The translations under genes and the position numbers were made by a program. A DNA stretch of 64,000 nt from Scyliorhinus canicula (Eukaryota): NCBI RefSeq assembly GCF_902713615.1, contig NC_052175.1, forward strand, positions 7,581,941-7,645,940, in the 5' to 3' direction. The notes beneath the pieces were generated by a model. That model had not been told where the DNA came from. It saw only the letters and a program-made list of their open reading frames with translations, and made no database searches. Positions 2,141-46,170 of this stretch are shown here, in pieces; the stretch's first letter is position 1, and each line of letters opens with the position of its first letter.

Positions 2141-2725
2141 TGATAACCACCCCACGAATCAGTCTGGATAACCTTCCCTGCACTCCCTCTCGATCACGAA
2201 CGTCGTTCCTCAGTTAAGGTGACGAAAACTGCATAAAGATTCCAGGTGTTGCCTCGCCAAGGCCCTGTATAATTGTAGCACAGGAGAGGTAAGTGAAATG
2301 TTGTATCAACTGGAAAACATCTTTGGGACTTTCAACGGCGAGAGAGAGGAGAAGGAAAAGATGTGGGGAGGATTAGGAAAACATAGCACCTCCTGCGATG
2401 ACATGGGAATGTACTGGGAAGTGGATGACAGTGGCGATGATGGAGGAATGGCCCAGGGCATCAAGGACACAGTCGTCGATGGCATTGTTTGTGAGGAGAT
2501 GGTGTTTTTCGTAATGGTATTATGCTTGAGTTTTTGGGAATGGCGGACTTGAATACTTTGAATAGCTAGACTGGAGGAGCAAAAAGGGCAGACGATATCG
2601 AACTATCATAAGTAACTGAAAACAAAATATACCACCTGTGCCATCGTCTCAATATTTCTTCGTGCCCATCATTATATGATTCGATGGCTCTTCCAATGTT
2701 GATGCCTGTATTTGTTTAATTCCAG

Positions 2726-3025
2726 AGAAGCTCCCCAGAGCCACGATTTCTGTCGACCCAGCCTCTGGTGTGGTGAGCAGAGGAAAGCCCATTCGATTGA
2801 CTTGCATAGGCGCAATTCTGCCCTCTGGTGGGCGATTTTACTTCTACCGTGATGATGACAAGAAGGGAACATTGGATGTATCCGGCAATTTTCACGCGGC
2901 CTCCTTCATCGTCAATGACATGGTTAACACTGGGAAATGGAACTACACCTGTGGCTATGCGAGAATTGTACAGCAGATAGCTTATCACGCACCACGCAGC
3001 ATCGCAGTGGAGGTGACTGTGGCAG
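2726..3025 (+). CDS. LRC-type (LILR/KIR/OSCAR-like) Ig C2 domain exon
   Basis: (E)KLPRATISVDPASGVVSRGKPIRLTC...FYFYR...ASFIVNDMVNTGKWNYTCGY...SIAVEVTVA. Cys spacing 48 aa. Acceptor ttaattccag and donor G|GTGAGT. 300 nt, phase 1-1. Confidence 0.85.
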
Positions 3026-3894
3026 GTGAGTGACTTGCAATAATGATCTGGGGAATGATCTGAAAACACAATGTCGGTTTTCACAGGAAAACATAATATA
3101 CAGAAATCTTAAGACCCTCTATCCAAAATCATCATTCAATGCGATCAGGGCTGTTCCTCCATACCAGCAATACCAGCAATACCGATCACGACTTTACTGC
3201 CTAGAAGTCTATAAATTTCCTTCTTAAATAAATACGATGGCATAGCCTCCATCGCCTTCGGTGGTAGATAATCCAGAGGTTCACCAGCCATCTCTGAGCG
3301 AGGAGACTGAGCTCGAATGCTCACATGCTCTGTGCATATTTTACTCAGAGTTGTCAGTTCGAAGATATTTTATTGTCTTTTGTGCTCCAATATATGTGTC
3401 GTTGGGGCGACCAGCATTTCTGTCTCATCCCTAACGGCTTGATTCAGAAGTTGGTGCAGAGTTGTTTTCTTGAATGCTGCACTCCATGTGGTTTGGGCAA
3501 ACCCCACTGTAAAATTATGGAGGGTGCCCTATAATATTGACCCCGCGGCAGTATATGGAAGGCGATAGAGTTCCAGCCAAAATGGAATCTGACCTGGAGA
3601 TGCAAGTTCCAACGCTCGTGTTACCATGCATCTTCAGTTAATTTAGCCAGGCACATAGATACATCTTTACCGCTATGTCCACTTCCAGAACATCACCATG
3701 CCTGCTCAAACTTAGTAGCTTGAAGTGTATTTGTTTCAATGTAAGAAGTATATAGCGGGTAAGGCAGTTGAACACAGAACACTGATTATAGCTTGGAGTT
3801 ATGACGCTGTGAGATTCAGAGAAACATGGTTAGAGGAAGGGGATGATTGGCAGCTGAATGTTGGAGGATTTAGATGATTCAGAATATATAGAGG

Positions 3895-4232
3895 AGGGCC
3901 TCACGGTAGCATGGTGGTTAGCATCAATGCTTCACAGCTCCAGGGTCCCAGGTTCGATTCCCGGCTGGTTCACTGTCTGTGTGGAGTCTGCACGTCCTCC
4001 CCGTGTGTGCGTGGGTTTCCTCCGGGTGCTCCGGTTTCCTCCCACAGTCCAAAGATGTGCTGGTTAGGTGGATTGCCCATGCTAAATTGCCCGTAGTGTA
4101 AGGTTAATGGGGGGATTGTTGGGTTACGGGTATACGGGTTACGTGGGTTTAAGTAGGGTGATCATTGCTCGGCACAACATTGAGGGCCGAAGGGCCTGTT
4201 CTGTGCTGTACTGTTCTATGTTCTATGTTCTA
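3895..4232 (+). repeat. V-SINE subfamily A
   Basis: Same head, V-domain and tail as 1570-1919. Confidence 0.9.
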
Positions 4233-4467
4233 TGCTAAAGGGCTAGGGGAGTAGCATTACTGGTTAAGGAGAATATTATTGCCATACTCTGGGCAGACAC
4301 CTTGTAGGTTTGAAACAAAGAACCAATCTGGGTAGAGCTCAGGAACAGGAAGGGGATAATCATAATGTTCGGCGTTTATTACAGGCCCCAAACTGTCAGC
4401 GAGAGACAGATGCGCAGATAGGTGGAGACATTTTGCATCGGTGCAAAAAGTAACAGGGTTCATCGTT

Positions 4468-7400
4468 TTTACGATATAGGTAAAAAAACGGGATGAGGTC
4501 CTACAAGCGGAATTCAGGGAGTTAGGAGTTAAACTAAAAAGTAGGACCTCAAAGGTAGTAATCTCGGGATTGCTACCAGTGCCACGAGCTAGTCAGAGTA
4601 GGAATGTCAGGATAGATAGGATGAATGCGTGGCTTGAGAGATGGTGCAAGAGGGAGGGATTCAAATTCCTGGGGCATTGGGACCGGTTCTGGGGGAGGTG
4701 GGACCAGTACAAACCGGACGGTCTGCACTTGGGCAGGACTGGAACCGATGTCCTAGGGGGGGTGTATTCTAGAGCTGTTGGGGAGGGTTTAAACTAAGGT
4801 GGCAGGGGGATGGGAACCAATGCTGGAAGTTGGAAGGTAGTAAAACAGGGACAGAAACAAAAGGAAGTAAGGGGAAAAGTGCAAGGCAGAGAATACATAG
4901 TCAGAAATCCATAAGGGCGACAGTACAAGGTACAGTGACTGAGGGGAGCACAATGAATAGGCCCAGTAATAACAAAAGGAATAAAACTGGAGATGTTAAG
5001 ATTCAAAACAGAGGTAAAAAAACCAACATAAGTGTACTTTACCTGAATGCTCGTAGTATTCGGAATAAAGTAAATGAGTTGGTGGCACAAATCATCGTAA
5101 ATGACTATGATTTAGTGGCCATTACTGAAACATGGTTAAAGGATGGTCACGACTGGGAGTTAAATATCCGAGGGTATCAAACTATTCGGAAGGACAGAGT
5201 GGATGGTAAGGGAGGTGGTGTTGCTCTGTTATTTAAGGATGACATCCGGGCAATAGTAAGGGATGACATCGGTGCTATGGAGGATAAGGTTGAATCCATT
5301 TGGGTGGAAATCAGGAATAGTAAGGCGAAAAAGTCACTGATAGGAGTAGTCTATCGGCCACCAAATAGTAACGATATGGTGGGGCAGGCAATAAACAAAG
5401 AAATAACTGATGCATGTAGAAATGGTACAGCAGTTATCATGGGGGATTTTAATCTACATGTCGATTGGTTCAACCAGGTCGGTCAAGGCAACCGTGAGGA
5501 GGAGTTTATAGAATGTATCCGCGATAGTTTCCTAGAACAGTATGTAATGGAACCTACGAGGGAACAAGCGGTCTTAGATCTTGTCCTGTGTAATGAGACA
5601 GGATTGATTCATGATCTCATAGTTAGGGATCCTCTCGGAAGGAGCGATCACAATATGGTGGAATTTAAAATACAGATGGAGGGTGAGAAAGTAAAATCAA
5701 ATACTAGTGTTTTGTGTTTAAACAAAGGAGATTACAAGGGGATGAGAGAAGAACTAGATAAGGTAGACTGGGAGCTAAGACTTTATGGTGGAACAGTTGA
5801 GGAACAGTGGAGAACCTTCCAAGCGATTTTTCACAGTGCTCAGCAAAGGATTATACCAACAAAAAGGAAGTTCGGAAGAAAGAGGGAAAATCGACCGTGG
5901 ATATCTAAGGAAATAAGGGAGAGTATCAAATTGAAGGAAAAAGCATATAAAGCGGCAAAGATTGCTGGGAGATTAGAGGACTGGGAAATCTTTAGGGGGC
6001 AACAGAAAGCTACTAAAAAATCTATAAAGAAGAGTAAGATAGAGTATGAGAGTAAACTTGCTCAGAATATAAAAACAGACAGTAAAAGTTTTTACAAATA
6101 TATAAGACAAAAAAGAGTGGCTAAGGTAAATATTGGTCCTTTAGAGGATGAGAAGGGAGTTTTAATAATGGGAAATGAGGAAATGGCTGAGGAACTGAAG
6201 AGGTTTTTTGGGTCGGTCTTCACAGTGGAAGACACAAATAACATGCCAGCGACTGATAGAAATGAGGCTATGACAGGTGAGGACCTTGAGAGGATTGTTA
6301 TCACTAAGGAGGGAGTGATGGGCAAGCTAATGGGGCTAAAGGTAGACAAGTCTCCTGGCCCTGATGGAATGCATCCCAGAGTACTAAAAGAGATGGCTAG
6401 GGAAATTGCAGATGCACTAGTGATAGTTTACCTAAATTCACTAGACTCTGGGGTGGTCCCGGTGGATTGGAAATTAGCAAACGTGACGCCACTGTTTAAA
6501 AAAGGAGGTAGGCAGAAAGCAGGAAATTATAGGCCAGTGAGTTTAACTTCGGTAATAGGGAAGATGCTGGAATCTATCATCAAGGAAGAAATTGCGAGGC
6601 ATCTGGATAGAAATTGTCCCATTGGGCAGACGCAGCATGGGTTCGTAAAAGGCAGGTCATGCCTAACTAATTTAGTGGAATTTTTTGAGGATATTACCAG
6701 TGCAGTAGATAACGGGGAGCCGATGGATGTGGTATATCTGGATTTCCAGAAAGCATTTGACAAGGTGCCACACAAAAGGTTGCTGCATAAGATAAAGATG
6801 CATGGCATTAAGGGTAAAGTAGTAGCATGGATAGAGGATTGGTTAATTAATAGAAAGCAAAGAGTTGGGATAAATGGGTGTTTCTCTGGTTGGCAATCAG
6901 TAGCTAGTGGTGTCCCTCAGGGATCCGTGTTGGGCCCACAATTGTTCACAATTTACATTGATGATTTGGAGTTGATGACCAAGGGCAATGTGTCCAAGTT
7001 TGCAGATGACACTAAGATGAATGGTAAAGCGAAAAGTGCAGAGGATACTGGAAGTCTGCAGAGGGATTTGGATAGGTTAAGTGAATGGGCTCGGGTCTGG
7101 CAGATGGAATACAATGTTGACAAATGTGAGGTTATCCATTTTGGTAGGAATAACAGCAAACGGGATTATTATTTAAACGATAAAATATTAAAGCATGCCA
7201 CTGTTCAGAGAGACTTGGGTGTGCTAGTGCATGAGTCACAGAAGGTTGGTTTACAAGTGCAACAGGTGATTAAGAAGGCAAATGGAATTTTGTCCTTCAT
7301 TGCTAGAGGGATGGAGTTTAAGACTAGGGAGGTTATGTTGCAATTGTATAAGGTGTTGGTGCGGCCACACGTGGAGTATTGTGTTCAGTTTTGGTCTCCT

Positions 7401-7935
7401 TACTTGAGAAAGGACGTACTGGCGCTGGAGGGTGTGCAGAGGAGATTCACTAGGTTAATCCCAGAGCTGAAGGGGTTGGATTATGAGGAGAGGTTGAGTA
7501 GACTGGGACTGTACTCGTTGGAATATAGAAGGATGAGGGGGGATCTTATAGAAACATTTAAAATTATGAAGGGAATAGATAGGATAGATGCGGGCAGGTT
7601 GTTTCCACTGGCGGGTGACAGCAGAACTCGGGGACATTGCCTCAAAATAAGGGGAAGTAGATTTAGGACTGAGTTTAGGAGGAACTTCTTCACCCAAAGG
7701 GTCGTGAATCTATGGAATTCCTTGCCCAGTGAAGCAGTTGAGGCTCCTTCATTACATGTTTTTAAGGTAAAGATAGATAGTTTTTTGAAGAATAAAGGGA
7801 TTAAGGGTTATGGTGTTCGGGCCGGAAAGTGGAGCTGAGTCCACAAAAGATCAGCCATGATCTAATTGAATGGCGGAGCAGGCTCGAGGGGCCAGATGGC
7901 CTACTCCTGCTCCTAGTTCTTATGTTCTTTTGTTC
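4468..7935 (+). mobile_element. Young CR1 LINE, 5'-truncated within ORF1, with intact ORF2
   Basis: ORF1 esterase C-terminus (DGLH) at 4570-4797, uninterrupted ORF2, 3' UTR ending in (ttcttatg)-like repeats. Confidence 0.95.
4830..7838 (+). CDS. CR1 ORF2: APE endonuclease plus reverse transcriptase, 1002 aa
   Basis: YLNARS, ITETW, GDFN and SDHN endonuclease motifs. NYRPVSLTS, GVPQGSVLGP and KFADD RT motifs. No stops. Confidence 0.95.
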   Translation: MEGSKTGTETKGSKGKSARQRIHSQKSIRATVQGTVTEGSTMNRPSNNKRNKTGDVKIQNRGKKTNISVLYLNARSIRNKVNELVAQIIVNDYDLVAITETWLKDGHDWELNIRGYQTIRKDRVDGKGGGVALLFKDDIRAIVRDDIGAMEDKVESIWVEIRNSKAKKSLIGVVYRPPNSNDMVGQAINKEITDACRNGTAVIMGDFNLHVDWFNQVGQGNREEEFIECIRDSFLEQYVMEPTREQAVLDLVLCNETGLIHDLIVRDPLGRSDHNMVEFKIQMEGEKVKSNTSVLCLNKGDYKGMREELDKVDWELRLYGGTVEEQWRTFQAIFHSAQQRIIPTKRKFGRKRENRPWISKEIRESIKLKEKAYKAAKIAGRLEDWEIFRGQQKATKKSIKKSKIEYESKLAQNIKTDSKSFYKYIRQKRVAKVNIGPLEDEKGVLIMGNEEMAEELKRFFGSVFTVEDTNNMPATDRNEAMTGEDLERIVITKEGVMGKLMGLKVDKSPGPDGMHPRVLKEMAREIADALVIVYLNSLDSGVVPVDWKLANVTPLFKKGGRQKAGNYRPVSLTSVIGKMLESIIKEEIARHLDRNCPIGQTQHGFVKGRSCLTNLVEFFEDITSAVDNGEPMDVVYLDFQKAFDKVPHKRLLHKIKMHGIKGKVVAWIEDWLINRKQRVGINGCFSGWQSVASGVPQGSVLGPQLFTIYIDDLELMTKGNVSKFADDTKMNGKAKSAEDTGSLQRDLDRLSEWARVWQMEYNVDKCEVIHFGRNNSKRDYYLNDKILKHATVQRDLGVLVHESQKVGLQVQQVIKKANGILSFIARGMEFKTREVMLQLYKVLVRPHVEYCVQFWSPYLRKDVLALEGVQRRFTRLIPELKGLDYEERLSRLGLYSLEYRRMRGDLIETFKIMKGIDRIDAGRLFPLAGDSRTRGHCLKIRGSRFRTEFRRNFFTQRVVNLWNSLPSEAVEAPSLHVFKVKIDSFLKNKGIKGYGVRAGKWS

Positions 7936-8069
7936 TTATGTGGTAGGGGATTTTAATTTCCCCTATATTGACTAGGACTCACATAGTGCTAGGGGTTTGG
8001 ATGGGGCAGAGTTTGTAAGGTGTATCATGGAAGCTTTGTTGATGCAATATGTAGATAGTCCAACTAGAG

Positions 8070-8417
8070 AAGGGGCAGCACGGTAGCATGGTGGTTAGCA
8101 TAAATGCTTCATAGCTCCAGGGTCCCAGGTTCGGTTCCCGGCTGGATCACTGTCTGTGCGGAGTCTGCACGTCCTCCCCGTGTGTGCGTGGGTTTCCTCC
8201 GGGTGCTCCGGTTTCCTCCCACAGTCCAAAGATGTGCGGGTTAGGTGGATTGGCAATGCTAAATTGCCCGTAGTGTTCTAAAAAGTAAGGTTAAGGGGGG
8301 GGGGGGTTGTTGGGTTACGGGTATAGGGTGGATACGTGGGTTTGAGTAGGGTGATCATTGCTCGGCACAACATTGAGGGCCGAAGGGCCTGTTCTGTGCT
8401 GGACTGTTCTATGCTCT
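8070..8417 (+). repeat. V-SINE subfamily A
   Basis: Same consensus, inserted in the old CR1. Confidence 0.9.
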
Positions 8418-10619
8418 AACTGGATCTGATGTTGGCGAAGGTGTCTGGAATGGTAGTTGAGGTGCGAAACTGGGGAAAGGCAAATTACGATAACATTAGA
8501 CAGGAATTGCAAAATTTCGATTGGGTGCGGCTGTTGGATAGTAAATCAACATCGGACATGTCGGAGTCGTTCAAGCGACAGTTGATTAAGATTCAGTAAA
8601 GTCACTTTCCTGAGAGAACGAATGATAAGTATGGGAGGTTTAAGATGTCTTGAATAACGAGGGATATTGTGAAACTCGTCAAAAAGGAACAGGAGGCTAT
8701 TGGACGCTCTCGAAGGAAGGGGTCCATTTACAAGTCTAGAGGAAGTAGGAGGTTACTGAAGCGGGAAATTAGGAGGGCTAGGAGGGGTCATGAAATGCCC
8801 ATGGCAAGTACGGTTAAGGTGAATTCCAAAGATTTTTATTCAGTTGTAAATGCAAGAGGGCGGCCAGGGCAATGATTATACCATTTAAGGACAGTAGACA
8901 AAATTTATTTGTTGAGCCATAGAAAATGGGCGATGTTCTAAATGAATATTTTGCATCAGTGTTGACCAAAGAAAGGGACTTTATGGAAGATGATTCTTGG
9001 GCAGGGTATGTGTGGACAGTCTGGATCATGTTAACATCGAAAAGGAGGAGGTATTTTAAATGATATTAAGGCAGGTTCGTGACCTGGATGGGTGGGATTT
9101 ACACCAGGGTACTGAGGGAAGCATGGAAGGAAATTGCTGGGGCCAGAAGTGACATCGTTGTATCCAATTGGCTATAGGTGAGATCGCAGAAGACTGGAGA
9201 ATAGGTAATGTGGTGCCGCTGTTTAAGAAAAGTAGCAGAGATAATCCTGGAAACTATAGCTTCACTATAGCTGGAAACCGAGCGAGTAGGTAAATTATTA
9301 GAGAGAGTTCTCAGAGTCAGGATGTATATCCATTTGGAAACAAATGGACTCATAAGCGATAGACAACATGGTTTTGTGAAGGGGACGTCGTGCCTTACGA
9401 ACTTGATCGAATTTTTTTGAGGAAGTGATAAAAATGATTGATGAGGGGTGGGCGGTGGATGTTGTTTACATGGACTTCAGTAAAGTATTTTAAAAGGCGC
9501 CACGTGGCAGACTGTTACAAAAGGTGACGTAACATCGGATAAGAGGTGAGTTGGTAAAATGGATACAGAACTGGCTCGGTCACATTAGGCGAAGGGTAGC
9601 AGTAGAATGGTGTTTTACTGAATTGAATGATGTGAATACTGGTGCTTGGGCTTCTATTATTTGTAACGTACATAAACGATTGGAGGGAACTGTAGCAAGT
9701 CTGATTAGTAATTTCGCGGACGACAGCGAGGTTGATGGGGTGGCAGATAGTATCAAGGATTGTCAAAAGCTACTGCAGGACATACATAGTTTGGAGACAT
9801 AGGCAGTGAAATGGCAAATCGGATTTAATCGTGTCAAATATAAGTTAATGCATTTTAGTAGGTCTAACATAGAGGGGGAAGTATATAGAAATATAGATAG
9901 TCAGGGAGATCTGGGAGTGCAGGTCGACAGATTTTGAGGTGGCAACTCAAGTGGACGGGGCAGTCAAGGAAGCAAAATGAATGGTTGCATTCATTGGACG
10001 GGGCATCGAATATTAAAACTGGCAAGTCATGCCACAAGTGTATAGAATCGCACTTGGAATATTGCGCAAAATTCTGGACACCACACTACCAGAAGTATAT
10101 GGAGGCTTTGGAGAGGGTGCAGAGGAGGTTTACCAGAATGTTGCCTGGTCTGGAGTGTGTTAGCTATTTTAGAGGCTGAATAGACTCTGACTGCTTGAAT
10201 TCGACAGACGGAGGTTGGGGATGATCTGATACAGGTCTACACGATTATGAGGTGCTTGGATAGCGTGGATGGGTTGGCACTCCTTCCCAGGGTGGAGGGT
10301 GTCAATCACCACGGGCCACAGTTCAGTGGGGATTTGCGAGGCAGGTTTTCTTTAGGCAGAAGGTGGTGTGTGCCTGTAAAGGGTTGCCAGGGCAGGATAT
10401 GGAAGCAGATACATCAACGGCGTTCAAAAGCACCTTGCAAACAAATGGATAGGGTGGGTACAGAGGGATACGGCACAAAGAATTCCTGAGGGTTTTGGCA
10501 AAGGTTGGTACCTTGAACAGTACAGGCTCGGAGGGCCGATGAGCCTGTTCCTGTGCTGTATTGCTCTTTGTATTTCCCCCTTGTCTCAGTTCATCGGATA
10601 TCGAAACCATCGTGTCTGT

Positions 10620-11160
10620 ATTTCTGCTTTCCCTAGGCTTGAGAAATCTAACGCTTCATAAATTCACCACCACCTACCAGACCATGTAAACTTCACCTCA
10701 TCAGTTATACCAGCTGGCCCATCCACTAACCCTCATGGATAAACCCTGTGCCACCCTTGGAGATTGCTGCTCGACATTGCCACTAACGGCAGCAACACCT
10801 CAGTCCTAAAACGTTCCTCATTCAGCTCAAATGGGACCATTTCCTCATTGCGCCGTAAATGCGAAACCACGCACAACCACTGAAATTTCCAAATCCCTTC
10901 CCAATTCGCCAAATGGACTCTCGATGTCTCCCTATCGACACGTCGATGCTCATTCTCCTGATTAAATCACTGCATCGAGTCGTTCACGCAGCCTTAAACT
11001 CGTACCCTCCCCCGCGGTCTCTGCGCTGCTTCAATCCCTGTCTCTTAAACATCTCCCGATTTCCATCCGCCATTGGCGGCCATGACATCACTACGGAGGC
11101 ATTTAAGATCTGGAAATCAGTCTTTTAACTTTTTCTACCTTTGCCTCTTTCTGAGCTACA
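10620..11160 (+). mobile_element. Degraded L2-like LINE 3' fragment
   Basis: Resembles an L2 RT C-terminus and 3' region. No intact ORF. Confidence 0.4.
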
Positions 11161-11270
11161 GGGGGGGCTGAGGTGAGTGAAACTCTATTGGTATTTATTA
11201 CCAAAATTATTGGTATTTACGCCACACTAGAATTGTCTATTAATATTCTAACCTCTTTTTAATTTTGTAG

Positions 11271-11362
11271 AATTTAATGGAACATCAAATACATTCCCAA
11301 CTCGTTTGTGTCTCTCCGCAATTCTCCTGCTTGGAATTGTTCTTGTTCTTGGGATGGAGTGA
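11271..11362 (+). CDS. Transmembrane exon of the LRC-type receptor (Arg at start of TM)
   Basis: Acceptor ctctttttaattttgtag, (E)FNGTSNTFPTRLCLSAILLLGIVLVLGME*. Phase 1, matching exon 2726-3025. Confidence 0.65.
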
Positions 11363-12289
11363 GAAAAGTTGCAACTGTGTGGCTGAGGTGGCTCCAATGA
11401 TTCAGATTGGAATTAAATCAATTACATATCAATTTCACTGTCAATGTAATGTAATGCTATCACCATGTATTAATTTATGATTAAATATTAACAATGTGAC
11501 TAGGACTGTCCTGATGCTATTTCCCAAGGAACAGTATAAGACCGGTCTTTCATACATGAGGCATAAAACATGCAATTAATTTTGTTCTCCTTGACAGAGC
11601 GAGCGCGATATAGAAACATCAAGAAGTGTTGGCTGTTGGTATATGAGTATACAATGGCGTGGGTGGTGGGGGCAAGAGATGTTTCCAAATTCATAATTTC
11701 TCTAGTTAATTGTTAAGTGATCCAGAGTAATGTTCTGGGACATGGATGTGACTTCCACGATGCCAGCTGGTGGAATTTAAATTTAAATTATAACTAATCA
11801 ATTTCAGACACAACCACCATTGAAAATCCACCTGCTTCGCTCATGAGCGCTGGAGACGAAAATCTGCCATTCATACAAGACATAAATGATGAGGGAAGGG
11901 AGATGACTTGCTGGAAATGGACAAGCTGATGAGATGCATGGACAGGGTGAATATCAAGAGACATATCCCCAGGGTGTAAATGGCTGTCACGAGGGGACAT
12001 CATTTTAAAGTAATTCGAGAAAGGAATAAGGGCTGCCAGAAGGCGGTTTTTTCACAGAAAGTGGTGGGTGCGTGGAATGCACTGCCATCTGGGGTGGAGG
12101 AGTTTGAGTCATTAGGGTTATTAAAGTGACTCTTGGACAGACACATGGACAGCAGTAAAATTGAAGGGGTGTAGGTTAAGGCCTGTACAGTGCTGTACCG
12201 TTCTATGTTCTGTACCTGTGACGCCTACATGTGACGACCGACGACGTTTTCCTTCTCCAATCTTTGTTTTCTTTTACGTCGTAAACCTC

Positions 12290-15200
12290 TCTACAAAGGA
12301 CAAAGAACAAAGACAATTACAGCACATGAACAGGTCGTTCGGCCCTCCAAGCCTGCGCCGATCCAGATCCTTTATCTAAAGATGTTGCCTATTTACGAAG
12401 GTCTCCATCTCTCTGTTCCCCACCCGTTCATATATCTGTCTAGATGCATCTTAAATTAGGCTATCGTACCCACCTCTACCACCTCCGCTGGCAAAGCATT
12501 CCAGGCACGCACCACCCTCTGTGTAAAAATCTTTCCACGCACATCTCCCTTAAACTTTCCCCCTCTCACCTTCAAATCGTGACCCCTTATAATTGACACC
12601 ACCACTCTTGGAAAACGATTGTTGCTATCCATCCTGTCCATACCTTATAATTTCGTAGACCTCAATCAGGTCTCCCCTCAACCTCCGTCTTTCCAACTAA
12701 AACAATCTTTTCTTCATAGTTAGCGCCCTCCATACCAGGGAATATACTGGTCAACCTCCTCTGAACCCTCTCTAAAGCATCCACATCCTTCTGGTAATGT
12801 GGCGACCAGAACTGCATGCAGTATTCCAAATGTGGCCGAACCAAAGTCCTATACAACTGTAACATGACCTGCTGACTCTTATACTCAATACCCCGTCCGA
12901 TGAAGGCAAGCATTCTGTATGCCTTCTTGACCACTCTATCAACCTGCGTTGCCACCTTCAAGGTACAATGTACATGAACTCCCAGATCTCTCTGTACATC
13001 AATTTTCCCCAGCACTCTTCCATTGACCATATAGTCTGCTCTTGAGTTAGATCTTCAAAAATGCATCACCTCGCATTTGCCTGGATTGAACTCCATCTGC
13101 CATTTCTCTGCCCAACTCTCCAATCTATCTATATTTTGCTGTATTCTCTGACAGTCCGCCTCGCTATCTGCAACTCCACCAATCTTCGTTTCATCTGCGA
13201 ACATGCTCATCAGACCACTTATACCTACATCCAGATCATTTATGTATATCACAAACAACAGTGGTCCGAGCACGGATCCATGTGGAACACCACTAGTCAC
13301 CGTTCTCCATTTTGAGACACTCCCTTCCACCACTACTCTCTGTTTACTGTTGCCCAGCTAGTTCTTTATCCATCAAGATAGTCCACCCGGAACACCATAC
13401 GACTTCACTTTTTCCATCAACCTGCCATGGGAAACTTTATCAAATGCTTTACTGAAGTCCATGTAGATCACATCTACTGCCCTACCCTCATCAAATAACT
13501 TTGTGACTTCCTCAAATAATTCTATTAGGTTTGTAAGACATGACCTTCCCTGCACAAAGCCATGCTGCCTATCACTGATACTTCTATTTTATTACAAATG
13601 TGAATAGAACATAGAACAGTAGAACATAGAACAGTACAGCACAGAACAGGCCCTTCGGCCCTCGATGTTGTGCCGAGCAATGATCACCCTACTCAAACCC
13701 ACGTATCCACCCTATACCCGTAACCCAACAACCCCCCCCCCCCCCCCTCCCTTAACCTTACTTTTTAGGACACTACGGGAAATTTAGTATGGCCAATCCA
13801 CCTAAGCCGCACATCTTTGGACTGTGGGAGGAAACCGGAGCACCCGGAGGAAACCCACGCACACACGGGGAGGACGTGCAGACTCCGCACAAACAGTGAC
13901 CCAGACGGGAATAGAACCTGGGACCCTGGAGCTGTGAAGCATCGATGCTAACCACCATGCTGCCGCGCTGAATAGATCCTATCCCTCAGTATCTTCTCCA
14001 GCAGTTTGCCTACTAGCTCACAGGTCTATAATTCTCTGGATTATCCCTGCTACCCTTCTTAAGCAAAGGGACAACATTAGCAATTCTCCAGTCCTCCGGG
14101 ACCTCACCCGTGCTCTAGGATGCTGCAAAGATATCTGTTAAGGCCCCAGCTATTCTGTCCCTCGCTTCCCTCAGTAACCTGGGATAGATCACATCCGGTC
14201 CTGGGGACTTGTCCACCTTAATGCCTTTTAGAAAACCCAAAACCTCCCCCTTCCTTATGCGACATTACCTAGAGTATTTAAACATCCATCCCTAGCCTCA
14301 ATATCCATTATGTCCCTCTCCTTGGTGAATGCCGATGCAAAGTACTCATTAAGAAGCTCACTCATTTCCTCTGACTCCACGCATAAATTCCGTCTTTCGT
14401 CTGAGTTGGCCAATCATTTCTCTAGTTACCAATTGCTCCTTATATCCGAATAAAAGGCTTTGGGATTTTCCTTAACCCTGTTAGCCAAAAATATTTCATG
14501 ACCTCTTTTAGCCTTCTTTATTGATATTCCTACTTTCCCGATATTCCTCCAAAGCTTCATCAGTTTTGAGCCGCCTCGATCTTACATATGCTTCCTTCTT
14601 CATCTGAGCTAGTCTCACAATTCCACCCGTCATCCATGGTTCCATAATCTTGCCATTCCTATCTCTCATTTTCACAGGAACATTCCTGTCCTGCACTCTG
14701 ATCAACCTTTCCTTAAAAGACCCCCACATTTCAAATGTGGATTTACCTTTAAACACCTGTTCCCAGTCCACATTCCCGAGCTCCTGCTGAATTTTGTTAT
14801 AGTTGGCCTTTCCCCAATTTAGCACTCTTCCTTTAGGACCACTCTCGTCTTTGTCCATGAGTATTCTAAAACTTTCAGAATTGTGATCGCTATTCCCAAT
14901 GTAATCGCCGACTGAAACGTCAACCACCTTGCCGGGATCATTCCCCAATACCAGGTCCAGTATGGCCCCTTCCCGAGTTGGACTATTTACATACTGCTCT
15001 AAAAAACTCTTCTGGATGCTCCTTACAAATTCTGACCCATCTACGCCTACATGAGTCTCATTCAATGTTGGGGAAGATAACATCTCCCATCACAACCAAC
15101 CTATTGCTCCTACATTGTTCTATAATCTGTCTACATATTTGTACCTCTACTTCAAGCTCGCTTTTGGGAGGCCTACAGTAAAGTCCTAACAATGTTACTG

Positions 15201-15345
15201 CACCCTTTCTATTTCTTAGCTCTGTCCATATTGCCTCAGTGCTCGAATCCTCCATCGTGCCCTCCTTTATCACAGCTGTGATATCATCTCTGACCAGTAA
15301 TGCAACTCCTCCACCCCCTTTAACCCTCTCTATCCCTCCTGAAGC
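12290..15345 (-). mobile_element. Degraded CR1 LINE
   Basis: Minus-strand endonuclease (14508-15273) and RT (12456-13555) fragments, (gaacaaa)n tail at about 12295. Confidence 0.9.
13608..13968 (-). repeat. V-SINE subfamily A inserted in CR1, with 7-bp TSD
   Basis: TGAATAG at 13601-13607 and 13969-13975. Confidence 0.9.
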
Positions 15346-15443
15346 TCTCTAAGCCCAATAAAAGCACAGTTTGAATTGAATGCCCCACACATACTACACC
15401 TTTTTTATGCAGGACCACTAAAAATAGGACCACTTTACTGTAG

Positions 15444-15783
15444 GGGCAGCACGGTAGCATGGTGGTTCGCACAAATGCTTCACAGCTCCATGGTCCCAGG
15501 TTCGATTCCCGGCTGGGTGACTGTCTGTGTGGAGTCTGCACGTCCTCCCCGTGTGTGCGTGGGTTTCCTCCGGGTTCTCCGGTTTCCTCCCACAGTCCAA
15601 AGATGTGCGGGTTAGGTGGATTGGCCATGCTAAATTGTCCGTAGTGTCCTAATAGTAAGGTTAAGGGGGGAAGTTGTTGGGTTACGGTTATAGGGTGGAT
15701 ACGTGGGTTTGAGTCGGGCTATCATTGCTCGGCAAACATCGAGGGCCGGAGAGCCTGTTCTGTGCTGTACTGTTCTATGTTCT
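15444..15783 (+). repeat. V-SINE subfamily A
   Basis: Consensus head, V-domain and tail. Confidence 0.9.
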
Positions 15784-16056
15784 AAAAATAACCCACTTCA
15801 ACAATGCAAACATATAGCACCTCACACCACCCTTGTTATTCTGACAAATCATCCAGCGATTTGGCTGACTCTTAACTGACTTCCACAACGTTCTAAGAGA
15901 ACATTATGTTCCGCTACAATAGAATAGCAAATGCTGGCCTTTACAGCGATACCCTCATCCCATGAAAGAATGAGAATAGAAGTTATGACAAATGCAGGTC
16001 AACTAAATGGTGCAGTGCAATCAGTTGCCATGAATCAATGATTCAGTTAACTTAGA

Positions 16057-16410
16057 GAACATAGAACATAGAACATAGAACAGTACAGCACAGAACAGGC
16101 CCTTCGGCCCTCAATGTTGTGCCGAGCCATGATCACCCTACTCAAACCCACGTATCCACCCTATACCCGTAACCCAACAACCCCCCCTTAACCTTACTTT
16201 TATTAGGACACTACGGGCAATTTAGCATGGCCAATCCACCTAACCCGCACATCTTTGGACTGTGGGAGGAAACCGGAGCACCCGGAGGAAACCCACGCAC
16301 ACAGGGGGAGGATGTGCAGACTCCGCACAGACAGTGACCCAAGCCGGAATCGAACCTGGGACCCTGGAGCTGTGAAGCATTTATGCTAACCACCATGCTA
16401 CCCTGCTGCC
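16057..16410 (-). repeat. V-SINE subfamily A
   Basis: Consensus on the minus strand. Confidence 0.9.
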
Positions 16411-18434
16411 CCAAATATTTTCAATATTTATATTTTCAAAACTACGTGCAATGGTGACATTCCCCATTGCCCCCACCGAGATTTTGTAAACGTGATCATT
16501 ACATGGAACTGCACTACAAAGTACAAGGGGCGTCAACGCTGCACAACATCTGGAGCTCATTCGATCAAAACTACTGCTTGCATCTAGATAATAGTTTGTA
16601 CCCTGAGCAACACAAAGGCCAGCACAGACACACTGATCTAATCGGCGTTCATCGTTATTTTCTCCCAATCTGGCAAGGTCATTAATCGTCAAAGGGAAAT
16701 TCATTTCTGTGAATTATAACTATTGACGTCGAATAAGTGATTAACTGTCTCGGATAGCTAAGCTAAGAGAGTGTGGACGAGAGCTGCATATCAACACGTA
16801 AATAACAAAGCGAAACTTGAGCATTGGATCTTATGGTCTTCTCGATGAAGGAAGAACACGTTTCTGGTTCGCAAGAGGGCATGTTGAAAGTTTTGCTTTA
16901 AATCATTTTGACGCACAGGATACCAACAGAAATGTCCAGAGTTTGATACATGACGTCAAAGACAGAACCTGACATAGTTTGATGGTATGTAATCATTGGC
17001 ATACATTGTGTATGCGTTAAGTGTTCCCACAGTAGTTTGTTTTAAAACATCAATGTCAGGATGAGCTCAGAAAAATCACACTAACTTAAAACAACACCAG
17101 TAATAGTGATTGGAAACTTTCAAGAATTTGCTTTCAAAGAGATGATTTTAGTTATTATGTGATTGAAAGATAGTCAGAAAATCTATAGAGGCGCAATTGA
17201 CTCATTATCGACGACCACACATTGTCGAGAATATGGCATTGCTTTGGGGTCAAAAACATGAAATCTATGTGTCCACTTAACAAATTGCCTGAAGCACAAT
17301 TCCACGTCGAGGCATGTGAAAACTGGTCAGGTGATTACAGACCGAAAATTGAATGCCCTCGGGAAAATCTACTACATATCAATATAATAAAGAGGACAAT
17401 GACAGCCCATTACTGGCATGAACAATTTATCATTCACTTTCCATTTTCTGGGTGATGTTACTGATGCTCTATCGGTTCGCAAGAGATTGCAATGTCAACA
17501 TCGTGTAATCACATGTCATTTTAACCAGAATCAGTGTAGACTCGGTGGGCAGAATAATCTGCGGCTGCACTGAAGGTAGTCTATCATTCTCCGATTCTAA
17601 CGACATTTACGATGTCACAAATCAGAATTATCGAGTTTGTATATCAATTGTCTGCACACAGCTATCTTCAAATGTGTTATCAATTATGTCGGGGTGTGTG
17701 TGCTTTGTCGAAGTGTTGACAGCGAATTAATGAATAAAAAGAGTCAAAGCCTCTTCTCTTCAAATATAATTTGTGGCATAAATGATATAATACCACCACT
17801 GCTGGCAGCACGCAAGTAGTGCAGGCGCTGGACTTTGTCAGTCTCGAAGTTCAGTAACTAACGAGGTGGCTACATTCCGGTCCGACTGATGACGTTTGGA
17901 TATTGAACTACATTTAACGGCTTTGGAGTTTGTAACCGGTTCTCTAGTGGTGCATTCAACCTGTTATCTACAGTTACTAAACATGAGCTCTCACATTCGT
18001 CGACCACTGAAGATATGGTCTGAAGATTATTTCAGATTGCAATGTGCACATTTCATAAAATTTGCCACATACTGTAAACCCCCTGTCAAATATTGCCAAT
18101 GTTCAATCCTGTACAGCATATCCTGTGAGATTATGTTTACATATTTCCAAGTGAATGTTATCAATTTCCCGCCTTATTCGTTGTGCTGGGAATAAATGCT
18201 GACGACAGAGACTCGAGACACACAATATTTACATTCAAGTCGGTACGCTTTTATTCACATTGTGTCAGTTCTGGAGCGCAGTGAGCACTATAACATTGGA
18301 ATTGTTATTCTGAAATCATGTGGGTTATGGTGACTGAGAGACCAATTCAGTTTTAATCCAAATGCATTACTTGCCAGTCTTGCCTCCAACCCCCCTGCCA
18401 GTTTCCCGCCAGTTATAATTCTTCAAATGCTATG

Positions 18435-33173: not shown

Positions 33174-33453
33174 GTAAGTGACGCCTCGGAATGTTAAACT
33201 GGAATCAGCCAAAATCAGGCTTCGTAGCTCTGAAAATGTGACCCAGTCATCGGGGGAAAGCGATGGAACGGGTAGTTTTAATTCATTTTTATGATTCTTA
33301 CTTTCAAGGGACGAAAAGGTCAATTGGAGAACAAATATAACCAAGAATAATGAACGACATTAATAAGATTGTTTTTAAATTACATGGACGTTCTTCCAAC
33401 GTTTGCTTCCTAAATCACGATAATCAGAGGTGATGTCACAATAATCTTTCTAG

Positions 33454-33786
33454 TTACAGAATCCGAGACCTCTCAATCTCACACTCCCTTCCAAATGACA
33501 GCTGACGTCGGGGAGACGGTGTATGTAGCCTGTCATCACATTTACGAAGTGGAATTGGAGGCTACCTATTTCTGGTACAAACAACGTGTGGGTGAAATCC
33601 CGAAACTAATCGATATCCCAGCCTGTGAGGGGAAATACTGTAATTTCAGTTCTAAAAAAGGCAGCAACAAAAATGAATTGATACTGGAACTTCGCAAAGT
33701 ACAGGTGAATGACTCGGGTTCCTATTATTGTGCTGATAAGGATGGTTATGCACCGCTCCAGAATGCACCTACATTACTGGTTGGAG
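33454..33786 (+). CDS. V-C1 receptor gene, exon 2 (Ig V domain including G strand)
   Basis: TVYVAC...FWYKQ...DSGSYYCA...NAPTLLVG. Acceptor ttctag (alternative ttacag at 33460, same phase) and donor G|GTAAGA. Phase 1-1. Confidence 0.92.
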
Positions 33787-33876
33787 GTAAGAGAACAAGT
33801 TAAATGAATTCAGATCGTGCACAACGTTATCATTGTGTGTAAATTATTTCTTATTTTTGTCCCAATATCGGTCCAG

Positions 33877-34206
33877 ACAGTTCCACCAACAAGACGGCTC
33901 TGCTGGTTCTTGTCCCACCGATTGAACTGAATTTAACGGAATCCGTCCCCTTGGTGTGTTTGGTCAGTGGAGTTTCTTCCAGGCAGATTGTTGTTTTCTG
34001 GAACATTTCCGGCCTGGTCACCGAGAGTCTGAGCGATCCCGGTACAATGGAGGCGGACGGAACCTACAGCATCCGAAATCACATCATGGTGTCGACGGAA
34101 ACATGGACAAACGGCAGTATCTGCACTTGTGTTGCTCAACTGGGGCCTGAAGGAAAAACATTGGGAAAGAGCGTGTCGTTCGCCAAAGGAACAGGGACGT
34201 GGACAG
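33877..34206 (+). CDS. V-C1 receptor gene, exon 3 (Ig C1 domain)
   Basis: (D)SSTNKTALLVLVPP...VPLVCLVSG...VFWNISG...DGTYSIRNHIMVSTETWTNGSICTCV. Acceptor gtccag and donor G|GTGAGT. 330 nt, phase 1-1. Confidence 0.92.
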
Positions 34207-35624
34207 GTGAGTGGGAGATCAGTGAAAAGAAGGATTGCGTTCAGAGCCAGTTGGATTTAGGTTTTAGGCATCTTCAGAAACCATCTATATAGCCGGTGAG
34301 GTTGTTTATGCATGTGTGTACTTTAGGTTGTTAAATTGGTTACATTAAAACGGGATTCTCTCTGCCCAGAGCAGGTTGTTGTCTGGTAATAACTTTCTTG
34401 TTTGCCCTTTTATTTCTGAAAATCTCTTAGAAGCTTTCAGCGATGCAGGCAAAACGATTTCATTTGGCCGATCCTGCCTCGGCTTTCCTTTTGAGTGCGT
34501 TCTCCTTTTTGGCCCGCCATTTTGTCATAACCATGTGATCAATTGTCATTCATGTCAACTTTTGATTTCCCTTTTGAAAGATATAATTGAACCTTTTTCC
34601 ATCGCTGTTTTCCGGCAGTATATCTTCTAATTGAGTTGAGGTTTTTTCTGCACTGCAGGCGCCATGAGGCAAAGATAAATCCCTATAGGAGGTTACATGG
34701 ACGAGTGTGCTGAGAAACGCAATTGATTCAGTTTTCTCTTTTTGTGCCGGAAGCTTATTTGCCAAAGGACAACTGCCTCGCCAAATCCTTTTTTAAAACG
34801 TTTGATTTGCTTTCTGATATAATAACCTTATATCGCATTCTTGATCAGCTCTGATCCGAGGGAATTGCGTAAAAGGGTGGATGGTGCTTTGCCTCTCTGT
34901 TCAATAATAGGGATTATTATTCAAATGATAAAATATTAATGCATGCTGCTGTGCACATAGTCCTGGGTATGCTAGTGCATGAGTCTCAAACAGTTGGTTT
35001 ACAGGTGCAACAGGTGATTGAGAAGGCAAATGGAATTTTGTCCCTCATTGCTAGAAGGATGGCGTTTAAGACTAGGGAGGTGATGCTGCAATTGTATAAG
35101 GTGTTAGTGAGGCTACACCTGGAGTATTGAGTTCAGTTTTGGACTCCTTACTTGAGAAATAACGTATTGGCACTTAAGGGTGTGTATAACATAGAACATA
35201 GAACATAGAACAGTACAGCACAGAACAGGCCCTTCGGCCCTCAATGTTGTGCCGAGGCATGATCACCCTACTCAAACCCACGTATCCACCGTATACCCAT
35301 AACCCTACAACCGCCCCCCCCCCTTAACCTTACTTTTTTTTATTAGGACACTACGGGCAATTTAGCATGGCCAATCCACCTAACCCGCACATCTTTTGGA
35401 CTGTGGGAGAACAGAGAACATAGAACATAGAACCTTACAGCGCAGTACAGGCCCTTTGGCCCTCGATGTTGCGCCGACCTGTGAAACAGCTCTAAAGCCC
35501 ATCTAAAGCTCTTATCGTCCATATGCCTATCCAATGACCATTTAAATGCGTTTAGTGTTGGCGAGTCCACTACTGTTGCAGTCAGGCCATTCCACGCCCT
35601 GACTACTCACTGAGTAAAGAATCT

Positions 35625-44700: not shown

Positions 44701-45302
44701 TACTGCCACTTCACCACTCTTCTCTGGAATTTCCAACCTTACTTTATATAATGGAACGTTACTCCTCCCACCCTGAATTCCACATGTCACCACCTTTTCT
44801 GGCAACATTCTTCCCAAACTACATAATTCCTCATCTCTTACCATTGAAGATTGACAAGCCCCTGTATCTCTTAAAATTGTGACTTCTTTACCTGCTCCTC
44901 CTGATACACATGAGTAAACTCTGCCCACACAAGTGAATTACTTAAAAACATCTGGCACCTTCTTTACAATTACTTCGTGAAGAGGCTGTACACTCGTTTG
45001 CCCCTCCTTCGCTTCCCTTGGGCTTTCCCTTACCACTCTAACAAATCCAACTGTCTGATCCGGTTTTCCCACATTAGCAGTCCAAGTGCATGTCTTCAAC
45101 CACCAAAACTGTGCCTTTGCATGGCCTTGTTTATTACAGTGAAAACATTTGAACCTTTTCTTTTCTTTTCCACCGTCCTGGATTTCTTTTAAAATCTGAG
45201 GTACACTCTCTTTATTGTCTCCCATCAGATCATCTTGACCTTTACCACTTGAGTATTTCTCATGCCCCCAGTTTCTATCCCTCACCAGCAGAAATTAATG
45301 TC

Positions 45303-46170
45303 AAAGAACAAAGAACAAAGAAAATTACAGCACAGGAACAGGCCATTCGGAACTTCCAGCCTGCGCCGATCCAGATCCTTTATCAAATCTGTTGCCTATT
45401 TCCCAAGGATCTACTTCCCTCTGTTCCCCGTCCGTTCATATATCTGTCCAGATGCATCTTAAATGATGCTATCGTGCCCGCCTCTACCACCTCCGCTGGC
45501 AAAGCGTTGCAGGCACCCACCACCCTCTGCGTAAAAACCTTTCCACGCACATCACCCTTAATCCTCCCCCCTCTCACCATGAAATCGTGACCCCTTCTAA
45601 TTGACACCCCCACTCATGGAAAAAAGCTTGTTGCCATCCAGCCTGTCTATACCTCTCAGAATGTTGTAGACCTCAATATGGTCCCCCTCCGTCTTTCCAA
45701 CGAAAGCAATCTTATTCTACTCAACTTTTCTTCGTACCTAGCACCGTCCATAACAGGCAACATCCCGGTGAACCTCCTCTGCACTCTCTCTCAAGCATCC
45801 ACGTCCTTCTTGTAATGTGGCGACCAGAACTGCACGCAGTATTCCAAATGTGGCCTAACCAAATTCCTATACAACTGTAACATGACCTGCAGACTCTTGT
45901 ATTCTGTACCCCGCCCGATGAAGGCAAGCATGCTGGCTGCCTTTTTGACCACTCTAACGACCTGCTTTGCTACCTTCAGGGTACAATGGACCTGAACTGC
46001 CAGATCTATCTGTTCATCAATGTTCCCCAGGACTCTTCCATTGACCATATAGTCCGTTATTGAATTAGATCTTACAAAATGCATCACTTCGCATTTGCCT
46101 GGATTGAACTCCATCTGCAATTTCTCTGCTCAACTCTGCAATCTAACTATATTTTGCTGTTCTCTGACAG
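45303..46170 (-). mobile_element. CR1 3' fragment inserted into the Gypsy gag
   Basis: QMEFNPGKC...PHLEYCVQFWSP and a (gaacaaa)n tail. Splits gag from the zinc knuckle. Confidence 0.88.

Follow-up and report, generated by a model that had tools for sequence, protein, structure and literature searches.

Last two coding exons of a transcribed LRC-type receptor gene in the catshark Scyliorhinus canicula, whose tail-less product carries an arginine at the edge of its hydrophobic anchor

The window (the whole 64-kb stretch of S. canicula DNA that was analysed, in which there are no runs of N) contains on its plus strand the two final coding exons of a genuine, transcribed Scyliorhinus gene whose product is an LRC-type (LILR/PIR/OSCAR/A1BG-like) receptor with several Ig domains. 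The features are the following:

2726–3025, plus strand: membrane-proximal Ig exon, D3-type, 300 nt, phase 1-1, with 99 full codons at 2728–3024
3026–11270, plus strand: intron of 8.2 kb with the donor GTGAGT at 3026, containing a LINE and further repeat fragments
4773–7835, within the intron: LINE open frame of 1021 codons, endonuclease plus reverse transcriptase
11271–11359, plus strand: coding part of the anchor exon, with the stalk EFNGTSNTFPT, Arg, 17 hydrophobic residues, and a final Glu
11360–11362, plus strand: TGA stop codon, overlapping the unused GT (11359–11360) of GA/GTGAGA
11363–11486, plus strand: 3'UTR in its minimal extent, contigs ending at 11466 (run X1) and 11486 (run X3), with that of run X7 continuing to 12000

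The borders of the Ig exon, an acceptor AG at 2724–2725 and the donor at 3026, were read from the sequence and, together with the 99-codon frame, confirm the 300-nt, phase 1-1 C2 exon that the first-pass annotation had described. The translation (KLPRATISV...C26...FYFYRD...C75GY...VEVTVA) has all nine of the columns that are invariant in the family, as judged from the 16 domains compared, and the single base carried over to the next exon completes a junction codon G/AA for Glu. The match to Pfam was weak (Ig_3, E = 0.0056); the protein identity amounted to 94% with the S. torazame counterpart scyTo_0005085 and to 59% with the Carcharodon sequence named OSCAR (XP_041035996). In the RNA-type runs the words of positions 2600–3200 were present at a share of about 0.49, which value is about the share of the exon alone.

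A profile combining the catshark Ig domain with those of its shark relatives (profile A1) was run against the PDB, where it matched PIR-B (1.1e-23), LILRB2 (7.7e-17), and LILRB1 (1e-14), with LILRA6, OSCAR, KIR3DL1, CHIR-AB1, and NKp46 also ahead of FcgammaR and FcepsilonRI (about 1e-4); one FCRL5 chain scored 2e-12, yet with no single stretch passing. The Ig exon alone matched LILRB2 (0.0024). The AlphaFold (AF2) model of the domain, with a pLDDT of 95.3, had its best folds in LILRA5, LILRB1, LAIR-1, CHIR-AB1, NKp46, OSCAR, and PirB (TM 0.7–0.78), and a second fold comparison gave HIDE1, LAIR1, VSTM1, PIR-B, A1BG, NCR1, TARM1, and IGSF1. Judged by profile and by modeled structure, the domain is closer to the LRC domains than to those of other IgSF families and is of the LRC type, as had been claimed for it from the letters; the comparison among Ig families proposed along with that claim ranks LILR, PIR, OSCAR, KIR, and CHIR above the Fc receptors.

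The anchor exon begins after an acceptor AG at 11269–11270 (the 3' end of the intron is TTTTGTAG, its last base being 11270) and, with the carried-over G, reads EFNGTSNTFPTRLCLSAILLLGIVLVLGME and then TGA, the Arg codon CGT occupying 11303–11305. The join of the two exons, 3025/11271, is predicted from the splice sites as GTGGCAG/AATTTAATGG. An HMM of the terminal exons from six other shark proteins recovered the anchor exon with E = 6.8e-14 as the sole hit when the window was searched as 2097 six-frame pieces, with the next best at E = 0.81. Transcription and splicing of this exon, on which the earlier transmembrane assignment depended, are established by contigs from four runs belonging to three studies: these begin to match at 11269/11270 and carry ahead of that point letters that lie elsewhere, to the extent of 924 nt in X10 (rec9), 597 nt in X3 (rec17), 50 nt in X1 (rec2), and 28 nt in X7 (rec25), the 1022-nt contig of X10 thereby joining to the anchor exon an upstream sequence about three exons in length. 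The contigs of X10, X3, and X1 have no substituted letters relative to the genome, and the four substituted letters in that of X7 are all located at 11913–11955, within the 3'UTR, so that the Arg codon and the anchor exon are unchanged in all four runs. The words of 11200–11500, with shares of 0.62–0.72, fit a transcript that extends from 11271 to beyond 11500.

All four contigs are colinear past 11359, reaching 11366, 11466, 11486, and 12000, and no joint leaving from 11358 is listed among the contigs of those runs. The donor GA/GT is therefore read through into the 3'UTR, by which reading the protein ends in ...LVLGME and lacks a cytoplasmic tail: its C-terminus is ...FPTRLCLSAILLLGIVLVLGME, with zero cytoplasmic residues beyond. 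The first-pass annotation had left a choice between the stop at 11360 and a splice from the GA/GT donor at 11359; the former is the one used, the latter is passed through, and the short tail that had been expected is no tail at all.

The earlier exons, for the signal peptide, D1, and D2, lie upstream of the window, as had been anticipated: in the S. torazame model P0001 a D2-type domain immediately precedes this Ig exon, and RNA contigs carry 597–924 nt of upstream sequence. By tblastn of the window we found no other exons of the family, either D1 and D2 or the tails of the relatives P0003, P0009, P0111, and P0050, for which short tails the search is a weak test; the one additional Ig hit, at 33.4 kb, was to a V-set exon unrelated to the family. 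None of the LRC flanking genes RPS9, CNOT3, PRPF31, and LENG8 lies within the 64 kb, where, apart from repeats, we encountered a single V-C1 gene copy (33.4–34.3 kb). The LINE frame of the intron matched the Pfam families RVT_1 (3.8e-33) and Exo_endo_phos (5.4e-13). In database searches with queries of 99, 359, and 151 aa, the RNA-contig proteins included, the sole returns were the fragment from S. torazame and relatives from lamniforms, and no S. canicula protein for the gene came back. A secreted protein of the SRCR/IGSF1 type was considered and rejected, since the anchor exon comes after the Ig exon; the DMBT1-like catshark protein P0013 was a distant match only (27% identity over the matched stretches).

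The shark relatives stand in RefSeq under the automatic names OSCAR, A1BG-like, and IGSF1-like, all of them predicted by annotation pipelines and named after mammalian proteins; the literature on shark LRC, LILR, FcRgamma, and DAP12 yielded no published description of the family. Among them are Carcharodon XP_041035996.1 and Cetorhinus XP_078390490.1 (both ‘osteoclast-associated immunoglobulin-like receptor'), Cetorhinus P0161–P0163, and Stegostoma XP_048381798.1 (‘IGSF1-like'). They have the same D3-type Ig domain, at 49–63% identity to that of the catshark, and directly after it, as in the catshark, a terminal exon of the form D/E-F-N-G-T-S...hydrophobic...E-stop, the catshark exon being identical to that of Carcharodon P0002 at 15 of 28 aligned residues; the basking-shark models comprise a signal peptide plus three Ig domains in 359 aa. 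The seven tail-less members, which include P0002, P0006, P0007, and P0161–163, all end in Glu followed by a stop, and at the position aligned with the Arg they have R, R, P, V, V, V, and S, the residue being kept only in the catshark gene and in P0002. Along with these, the family contains inhibitory members with two ITIM-like motifs, e.g. VLYASL and CVYAEM (P0003, P0004, P0010, P0047, P0164). The same helix is found in Mustelus P0111 (XP_078059674.1, ‘FCRL5'), as R-L-[AC]-x...G-I-V-x-x-L-G-M-E, and a helix of the same type in Heterodontus P0050 (XP_067878191.1, ‘DM43-like'), as H-Y-T...R-L-C-I-S...I-I-E, in both instances—unlike the catshark—with tails of 31 and 36 aa, respectively, which tails are without tyrosine motifs; the ectodomains of those two proteins belong to other subfamilies. 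The occurrence of the same helix with genuine tails indicates a true membrane-spanning module.

A tail-less product would be incapable of signaling alone. The R-x17-E helix is most likely the membrane anchor, and the arginine in it would form a pair with the aspartate within the transmembrane segment of an ITAM adaptor of the zeta/gamma family (CD3zeta or an FcRgamma-like chain), which pairing would make the receptor the activating counterpart of the ITIM-bearing members in the same shark family and the helix the shark version of the FcRgamma-coupling transmembrane segment of tetrapod LRC receptors. That the receptor is coupled to an adaptor in this manner we put at somewhat below even odds. 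With the tetrapod receptors in question (LILRA, OSCAR, GPVI, FCAR, NCR1, TARM1, IGSF1; Guselnikov and Taranin 2019, PMC6557307) the catshark gene has in common the LRC-type Ig domains each encoded by one phase 1-1 exon, an Arg in the outer portion of the helix—here on the outer border of the hydrophobic run—with an acidic residue 15–17 residues later, an acidic-aromatic exon start (DYT versus EFN/DFN), the lack of a signaling motif of its own, and ITIM-bearing relatives. In the activating transmembrane segment of tetrapods NxxR is the defining motif, the Arg being accompanied by an acidic residue, itself unusual, at the C-terminal end (PMC6557307). The turtle and lizard LRC proteins P0097, P0035, P0015, and P0128 have canonical DYT..NxxR helices and share the spacing of Arg, 15–17 hydrophobic residues, and Glu/Asp, with the acidic residue 17th–18th after the Arg versus the 18th in the catshark. 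As to the partner, catsharks express CD3Z, an ITAM adaptor that bears the Asp (PMC10768021), and counting against the coupling is a survey of 2014 in which the shark genomes were without FcRgamma (PMC4016189).

The catshark departs from those tetrapod receptors in several respects. The NxxR is absent, the sequence S-N-T-F-P-T-R having Phe in place of Asn at −3 and an Asn at −5 (in P0002 there is one at −1 as well as at −5, and in P0111 and P0050 there is no such Asn); between the exon start, which resembles DYT and is EFN in the catshark, DFN in relatives, and HYT in P0050, and the Arg there are some three extra residues; the cytoplasmic tail is wholly missing; and the Arg varies among the closest shark relatives, being present in only two of the seven tail-less orthologues and paralogues. 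The adaptor-coupled receptors that we know of have at least about five tail residues, most often basic, beyond the acidic one, so that an ending in Glu with nothing beyond would be unusual. Of the activating type assigned by the first-pass annotation, what stands is the R-x17-E geometry and the occurrence of the helix with tails in two sharks, whereas the motif, the conservation of the Arg, and the tail do not bear that assignment out, and a GPI signal fits the exon equally well.

Signals for GPI attachment, by rules of the Udenfriend/Eisenhaber type, have small residues at omega and omega+2, a polar spacer of 5–10 residues in which any residue is tolerated where the catshark Arg sits, and a hydrophobic stretch that continues to the C-terminus without a tail; in the pairs FcgammaRIIIA/FcgammaRIIIB (CD16a/b) and the transmembrane and GPI forms of CD58 the loss of the tail, with a small omega residue, produced such a signal. 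The catshark exon can be read in the same way, although those pairs come from another family of Ig receptors and the reading is a possibility taken from the residues: the Gly of N-G-T-S would be omega and the Ser omega+2, the spacer would consist of NTFPTR, and the 17 hydrophobic residues ahead of Glu and the stop would serve as the C-terminal signal, which terminal exon would be removed in the ER to leave the mature protein on lipid, with the arginine cut away and irrelevant, as in the tail-truncated FcgammaRIIIB relative to FcgammaRIIIA. A lipid anchor of this kind we rate as a serious, albeit tentative, possibility. It would agree with a hydrophobic stretch that reaches the very C-terminus; with the G-x-[S/C] found 8–9 residues ahead of the hydrophobic run in all seven tail-less members—including Stegostoma, whose N-G-A-S preserves it without being a glycosylation sequon—and missing from the tail-bearing P0111, P0050, and P0009; with an Arg position free to vary among R, P, V, and S, as a spacer residue would be; and with three basking-shark paralogues having neither charge nor tail, which would make little sense in a signaling transmembrane receptor. 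The homology of the helix to the transmembrane module with tails of other shark receptors argues, however, in the opposite direction, as does the R...E geometry that it has in common with the tetrapod LRC segments; the NGT may be simply a glycosylation site, the G-x-[S/C] of the seven tail-less proteins, given how closely they are related, counts as a single observation, and we know of no GPI-anchored LRC member. Of the two, signaling through a partner chain is by a small margin the more probable.

Two further explanations appear to us less probable. The gene might be a nonsignaling or decaying copy, i.e., a decoy, a poorly anchored or shed receptor, or a pseudogene transcript broken upstream, with which notion the presence of only the last two exons in the window, the failure of the database searches to return an S. 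canicula protein model, and the fast turnover of LRC-type families would be compatible; but neither exon is damaged, the splice sites follow the consensus, every invariant residue of the family is present, the long X10 contig joins its upstream exons to the anchor exon, and the near-identity of the Ig exon to its S. torazame counterpart speaks likewise for a maintained gene, so that we regard decay as improbable. More improbable still is a main product spliced at the donor GA/GTGAGA (11358/11359), with a tail from a downstream exon: the Glu-stop of the seven tail-less relatives does fit a conserved GAGTGA that is also donor-like, and P0009, P0111, and P0050 continue beyond the same Glu—Carcharodon P0009, with ...LLGIE/CSHMKRKK..., may be a case of the use of that very donor—but the catshark contigs pass straight through the site, and tblastn detected no tail-like exon downstream, a weak test for such short peptides.

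According to the survey of 2014, sharks are without C2-only receptors of the LRC type and without FcRgamma, both of which arose with the bony fish (PMC4016189). The catshark gene, together with relatives from at least seven genera of sharks, shows that paired receptors of the LRC type are older than the bony fish. The coupling of the arginine helix to a zeta/gamma adaptor, if true, would date the activating/inhibitory logic of NK and myeloid cells to the origin of the jawed vertebrates, and would give the transmembrane exon, which is the most conserved LRC element, a traceable precursor in sharks. One may go further and propose, as an idea that we consider rather unlikely, that the tetrapod NxxR exon, which couples to FcRgamma, descends from the shark R-x(15–17)-E anchor exon, that adaptor-coupled activating LRC receptors and ITIM-bearing ones paired with them were already present in the last ancestor common to the jawed vertebrates, and that the tail-less exon switched between Arg-bearing, adaptor-coupled forms and Arg-less GPI or decoy forms; such an ancestry would contradict the published origin of the LRC receptors and FcRgamma in bony fish. 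The weight of the present gene is limited in that the family is already in RefSeq under borrowed names, of which family the catshark gene is one further member. A GPI signal, for its part, would, if true, make this the first branch of LRC-type receptors known to us to be anchored by lipid.

In the 3'UTR the hexamer ATTAAA occurs at 11412–11417 and again at 11480–11485, and at 11443 we observed a 5-nt length polymorphism, the letters being left out in the contigs of X1, X3, and X7.

The LRC-like receptor gene is represented by two exons:

2726-3025, + strand: Ig exon of 300 nt, with a polypyrimidine tract and AG (2724-2725) before it and the donor GTGAGT at 3026
11271 to the TGA at 11360-11362, + strand: terminal anchor exon, with the acceptor TTTTGTAG ending at 11270

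The Ig exon has the position, size, and phase proposed in the first-pass annotation, with AG/GT borders, a 1-1 phase, 99 full codons (2728-3024), both Ig cysteines, and the motifs FYFYRD and CGY. Pfam recognized only a weak Ig_3 (E=0.0056); more informative was an all-against-all HMMER search with the Ig domain, which retrieved 220 proteins at E<=0.001 with shark proteins on top—from Carcharodon, Cetorhinus, Heterodontus, Stegostoma, Mustelus, and Heptranchias—named by the NCBI pipeline "osteoclast-associated immunoglobulin-like receptor," "alpha-1B-glycoprotein-like," or "immunoglobulin superfamily member 1-like." The nearest protein, at 94% identity, belongs to Scyliorhinus torazame; it is a fragment model of 151 aa that carries a D2-type domain directly 5' of the matching exon and reads through the donor. 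The domain type was also matched, in 10 stretches at 27% identity, by the S. canicula protein XP_038642640.1, named "deleted in malignant brain tumors 1-like"; many related domains thus occur in a far larger protein (1615 aa) of the same species.

A profile built from the Ig domain and 15 relatives matched, among the solved structures of the PDB, PIR-B (1.1e-23), LILRB2 (7.7e-17), and LILRB1 (1e-14), followed by LILRA6, LILRA2, OSCAR, KIR3DL1, CHIR-AB1, and NKp46, with the classical Fc receptors at only ~1e-4; a full-length basking-shark relative as the query gave the same ranking. The AlphaFold model of the domain was confident (pLDDT 95.3), its best solved folds being LILRA5, LILRB1, LAIR-1, CHIR-AB1, LILRB2/4, NKp46, OSCAR, and PirB, and its best reviewed proteins HIDE1, LAIR1, VSTM1, PIR-B, A1BG, NCR1, TARM1, IGSF1, KIR, and GPVI. 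The earlier LRC-type reading of the Ig domain holds, and the gene groups with the LRC-type receptors in its domain sequence, fold, exon structure, and possession of paired forms.

The second exon was likewise present as first described: once the G of 3025 is added in front, it translates as EFNGTSNTFPTRLCLSAILLLGIVLVLGME, followed by the TGA. That this anchor exon is real is established by two independent lines, homology and transcripts. The same short terminal exon directly follows a D3-type domain in six relatives (white shark P0002; basking shark P0007 and P0161-P0163; zebra shark P0006), and an HMM built from their terminal exons, the window sequence being left out, found a single place among 2097 six-frame pieces of the window, 11252-11359 on the + strand (E=6.8e-14; next best E=0.81). 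The RNA-type sequencing runs contained ~0.49 of the words of 2600-3200 around the Ig exon, about the exon-only share, and 0.62-0.72 of those of 11200-11500, the share expected for a transcript from 11271 onward. Within 11001-17000, each of four runs, drawn from three studies, yielded a contig that begins to match at 11269 or 11270, the remainder coming from elsewhere:

Run X10, record 9: 1022 nt, window 11269-11366, 924 nt of upstream sequence from elsewhere
Run X3, record 17: 809 nt, window 11270-11486, 597 nt of upstream sequence from elsewhere
Run X1, record 2: 273 nt, window 11269-11466, 50 nt of upstream sequence from elsewhere
Run X7, record 25: 755 nt, window 11269-12000, 28 nt of upstream sequence from elsewhere

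This pattern is produced by spliced RNA only, and a match that begins two letters inside the intron is what a preceding exon with a final AG would give; the Ig exon has one (GCAG). From the phase, the AG overlap, the presence of both exons in the same runs, and the D3-to-anchor order in the six relatives, we infer that the exons are joined at 3025|11271.

For the 3' end, the first pass had offered either the stop at 11360 or a GA|GTGAGA donor at 11359. In all four contigs the match stays colinear across the GT at 11359 and on past the TGA, with no joint listed from 11358; the stop is therefore used and the GT read through, so that the protein has no cytoplasmic tail. With this contig-level evidence a rare spliced isoform is still compatible, but a tail added through that donor as the main form is most improbable. 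The X1, X3, and X10 contigs contain 0 differing letters and X7 four, all at 11913-11955, so that the arginine codon and the stop are identical in all four runs. The 3'UTR contains two candidate poly(A) signals, ATTAAA at 11412 and 11480, along with a 5-nt length difference at 11443 in an (AATGT)n-like stretch, where X1, X3, and X7 are short by 5 letters relative to the window—either a non-coding polymorphism or an assembly slip.

We aligned the relatives by anchoring on the arginine position:

Catshark (window): FPT-R-LCLSAILLLGIVLVLGME, then stop; tail-less
White shark P0002: FQN-R-LGLVTFVLLGLCLSWE, then stop; tail-less
Basking shark P0007: FQN-P-...; tail-less
Basking shark P0161-P0163: FPN-V-...; tail-less
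Zebra shark P0006: LSS-S-...; tail-less
White shark P0009: His at the arginine position, continuing after Glu with CSHMKRKKDSDGRVTD; tail-bearing

The tail-less members, seven of seven in four genera, end in Glu and then the stop, and in the catshark the GAG that encodes this Glu directly precedes TGA, the resulting GAGTGA making the stop overlap a donor-like GTGAG. Since P0009 apparently runs on past the same Glu into a tail, the relatives being compared as proteins only, this arrangement suggests that an ancestral donor may double as a stop when unspliced.

An arginine helix in the membrane would couple the receptor to an adaptor chain, which, as judged from sequence, would be the single most likely mechanism; we tentatively place it in the lead, with GPI anchoring not far behind and a decoy or a copy in decay as an unlikely alternative. 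The arginine, the 15-17 hydrophobic residues, and the acidic residue reproduce the spacing of turtle and lizard LRC proteins (P0097, P0035, P0015, P0128), which carry canonical DYT..NxxR helices. The same shark helix has a 31-residue tail after the helix run in the Mustelus "FCRL5" XP_078059674.1 (IPIRLAVAVLVTFGIVIILGME-FIRTEGKK...) and the same helix type a 36-residue one in the Heterodontus "DM43-like" XP_067878191.1 (HYT...RLCISGF...IIE-YLMN...), which tails make it a genuine membrane-spanning module. The family includes members with two ITIM-like motifs, and the expression of CD3Z in catsharks (PMC10768021) also counts in favor of adaptor coupling. Guselnikov and Taranin consider the NxxR transmembrane subtype, with its essential Arg, preceding Asn, DYT start, and unusual acidic C-end, to be better conserved than any other element of the LRC (PMC6557307). 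The catshark gene may work like that FcRgamma-coupled subtype, but is at most a putative member of it, since the defining NxxR is missing (Phe at -3). Further against adaptor coupling, the arginine is kept in only two of the seven tail-less members, and the tail has zero residues and ends in Glu, a combination that we know of in no adaptor-coupled receptor. The original proposal of an activating receptor that pairs with FcRgamma has partial support.

GPI anchoring, somewhat less probable, would make the anchor exon an attachment signal, as predicted from the same 30 residues, which conform to all the classical rules: G-T-S would occupy omega to omega+2, the next six residues, the last of them the arginine, would be the spacer, and a hydrophobic stretch of 17 residues reaches the end. 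All seven tail-less members have G-x-[S/C], which none of the three tail-bearing ones shows; the Stegostoma form N-G-A-S, which is not a glycosylation sequon, still keeps it; and the free R/P/V/S variation is that expected of a spacer position. The seven proteins are, however, closely related, so that the shared motif counts as one observation, and we know of no GPI-anchored LRC member.

In the literature on shark LRC genes we found nothing later than Akula et al. (2014), who described shark genomes as being without LRC homologues having only C2 domains and without FcRgamma (PMC4016189). Many pipeline models of the family are already in RefSeq; the value of this gene lies in its tail-less arginine anchor, which opens to direct test either where the activating module of the LRC came from or whether the LRC has a GPI branch.

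The window has 0 N runs, and no exons of the family beyond the Ig and anchor exons were found in the whole 64 kb. Its other features are:

4480-7835, + strand (host-gene orientation): LINE in the 8.2-kb intron that separates the two exons; its frame is open over 1021 codons at 4773-7835 (Pfam Exo_endo_phos endonuclease, 5.4e-13; RVT_1 reverse transcriptase, 3.8e-33)
33414-33800 and 33843-34289, + strand: V-set frame (Pfam, E=3.3e-7; ...YFWYKQ...DSGSYYCA...) and C1-set frame (E=6.4e-8)
42280-47248, - strand: LTR-type retroelement fragments in several broken frames (rve, RVT_1, gag-like)
13601-14000, 15401-15800, and 16001-16400: short interspersed repeats of very high contig depth

The LINE is removed with the intron by splicing. 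The adjacent V-set and C1-set frames, ~22 kb downstream of the anchor exon, make up a copy of a V-C1 receptor-like gene, so that LRC-like and antigen-receptor-like genes lie near each other here. The LTR-type fragments comprise an integrase core at 43658-43972 (rve, 5.8e-11), a reverse transcriptase at 42280-42597 (RVT_1, 6.3e-11), and gag-like frames further up. Over the interspersed repeats the summed contig depth of all four RNA-type runs was 10^5-10^6 versus 10^2 for the gene, and chimeric joints from one copy to another are frequent there; the same tRNA-like SINE motif (translated ...GFLPQSKDVRVRWIG...) recurs in several other copies dispersed across the window.
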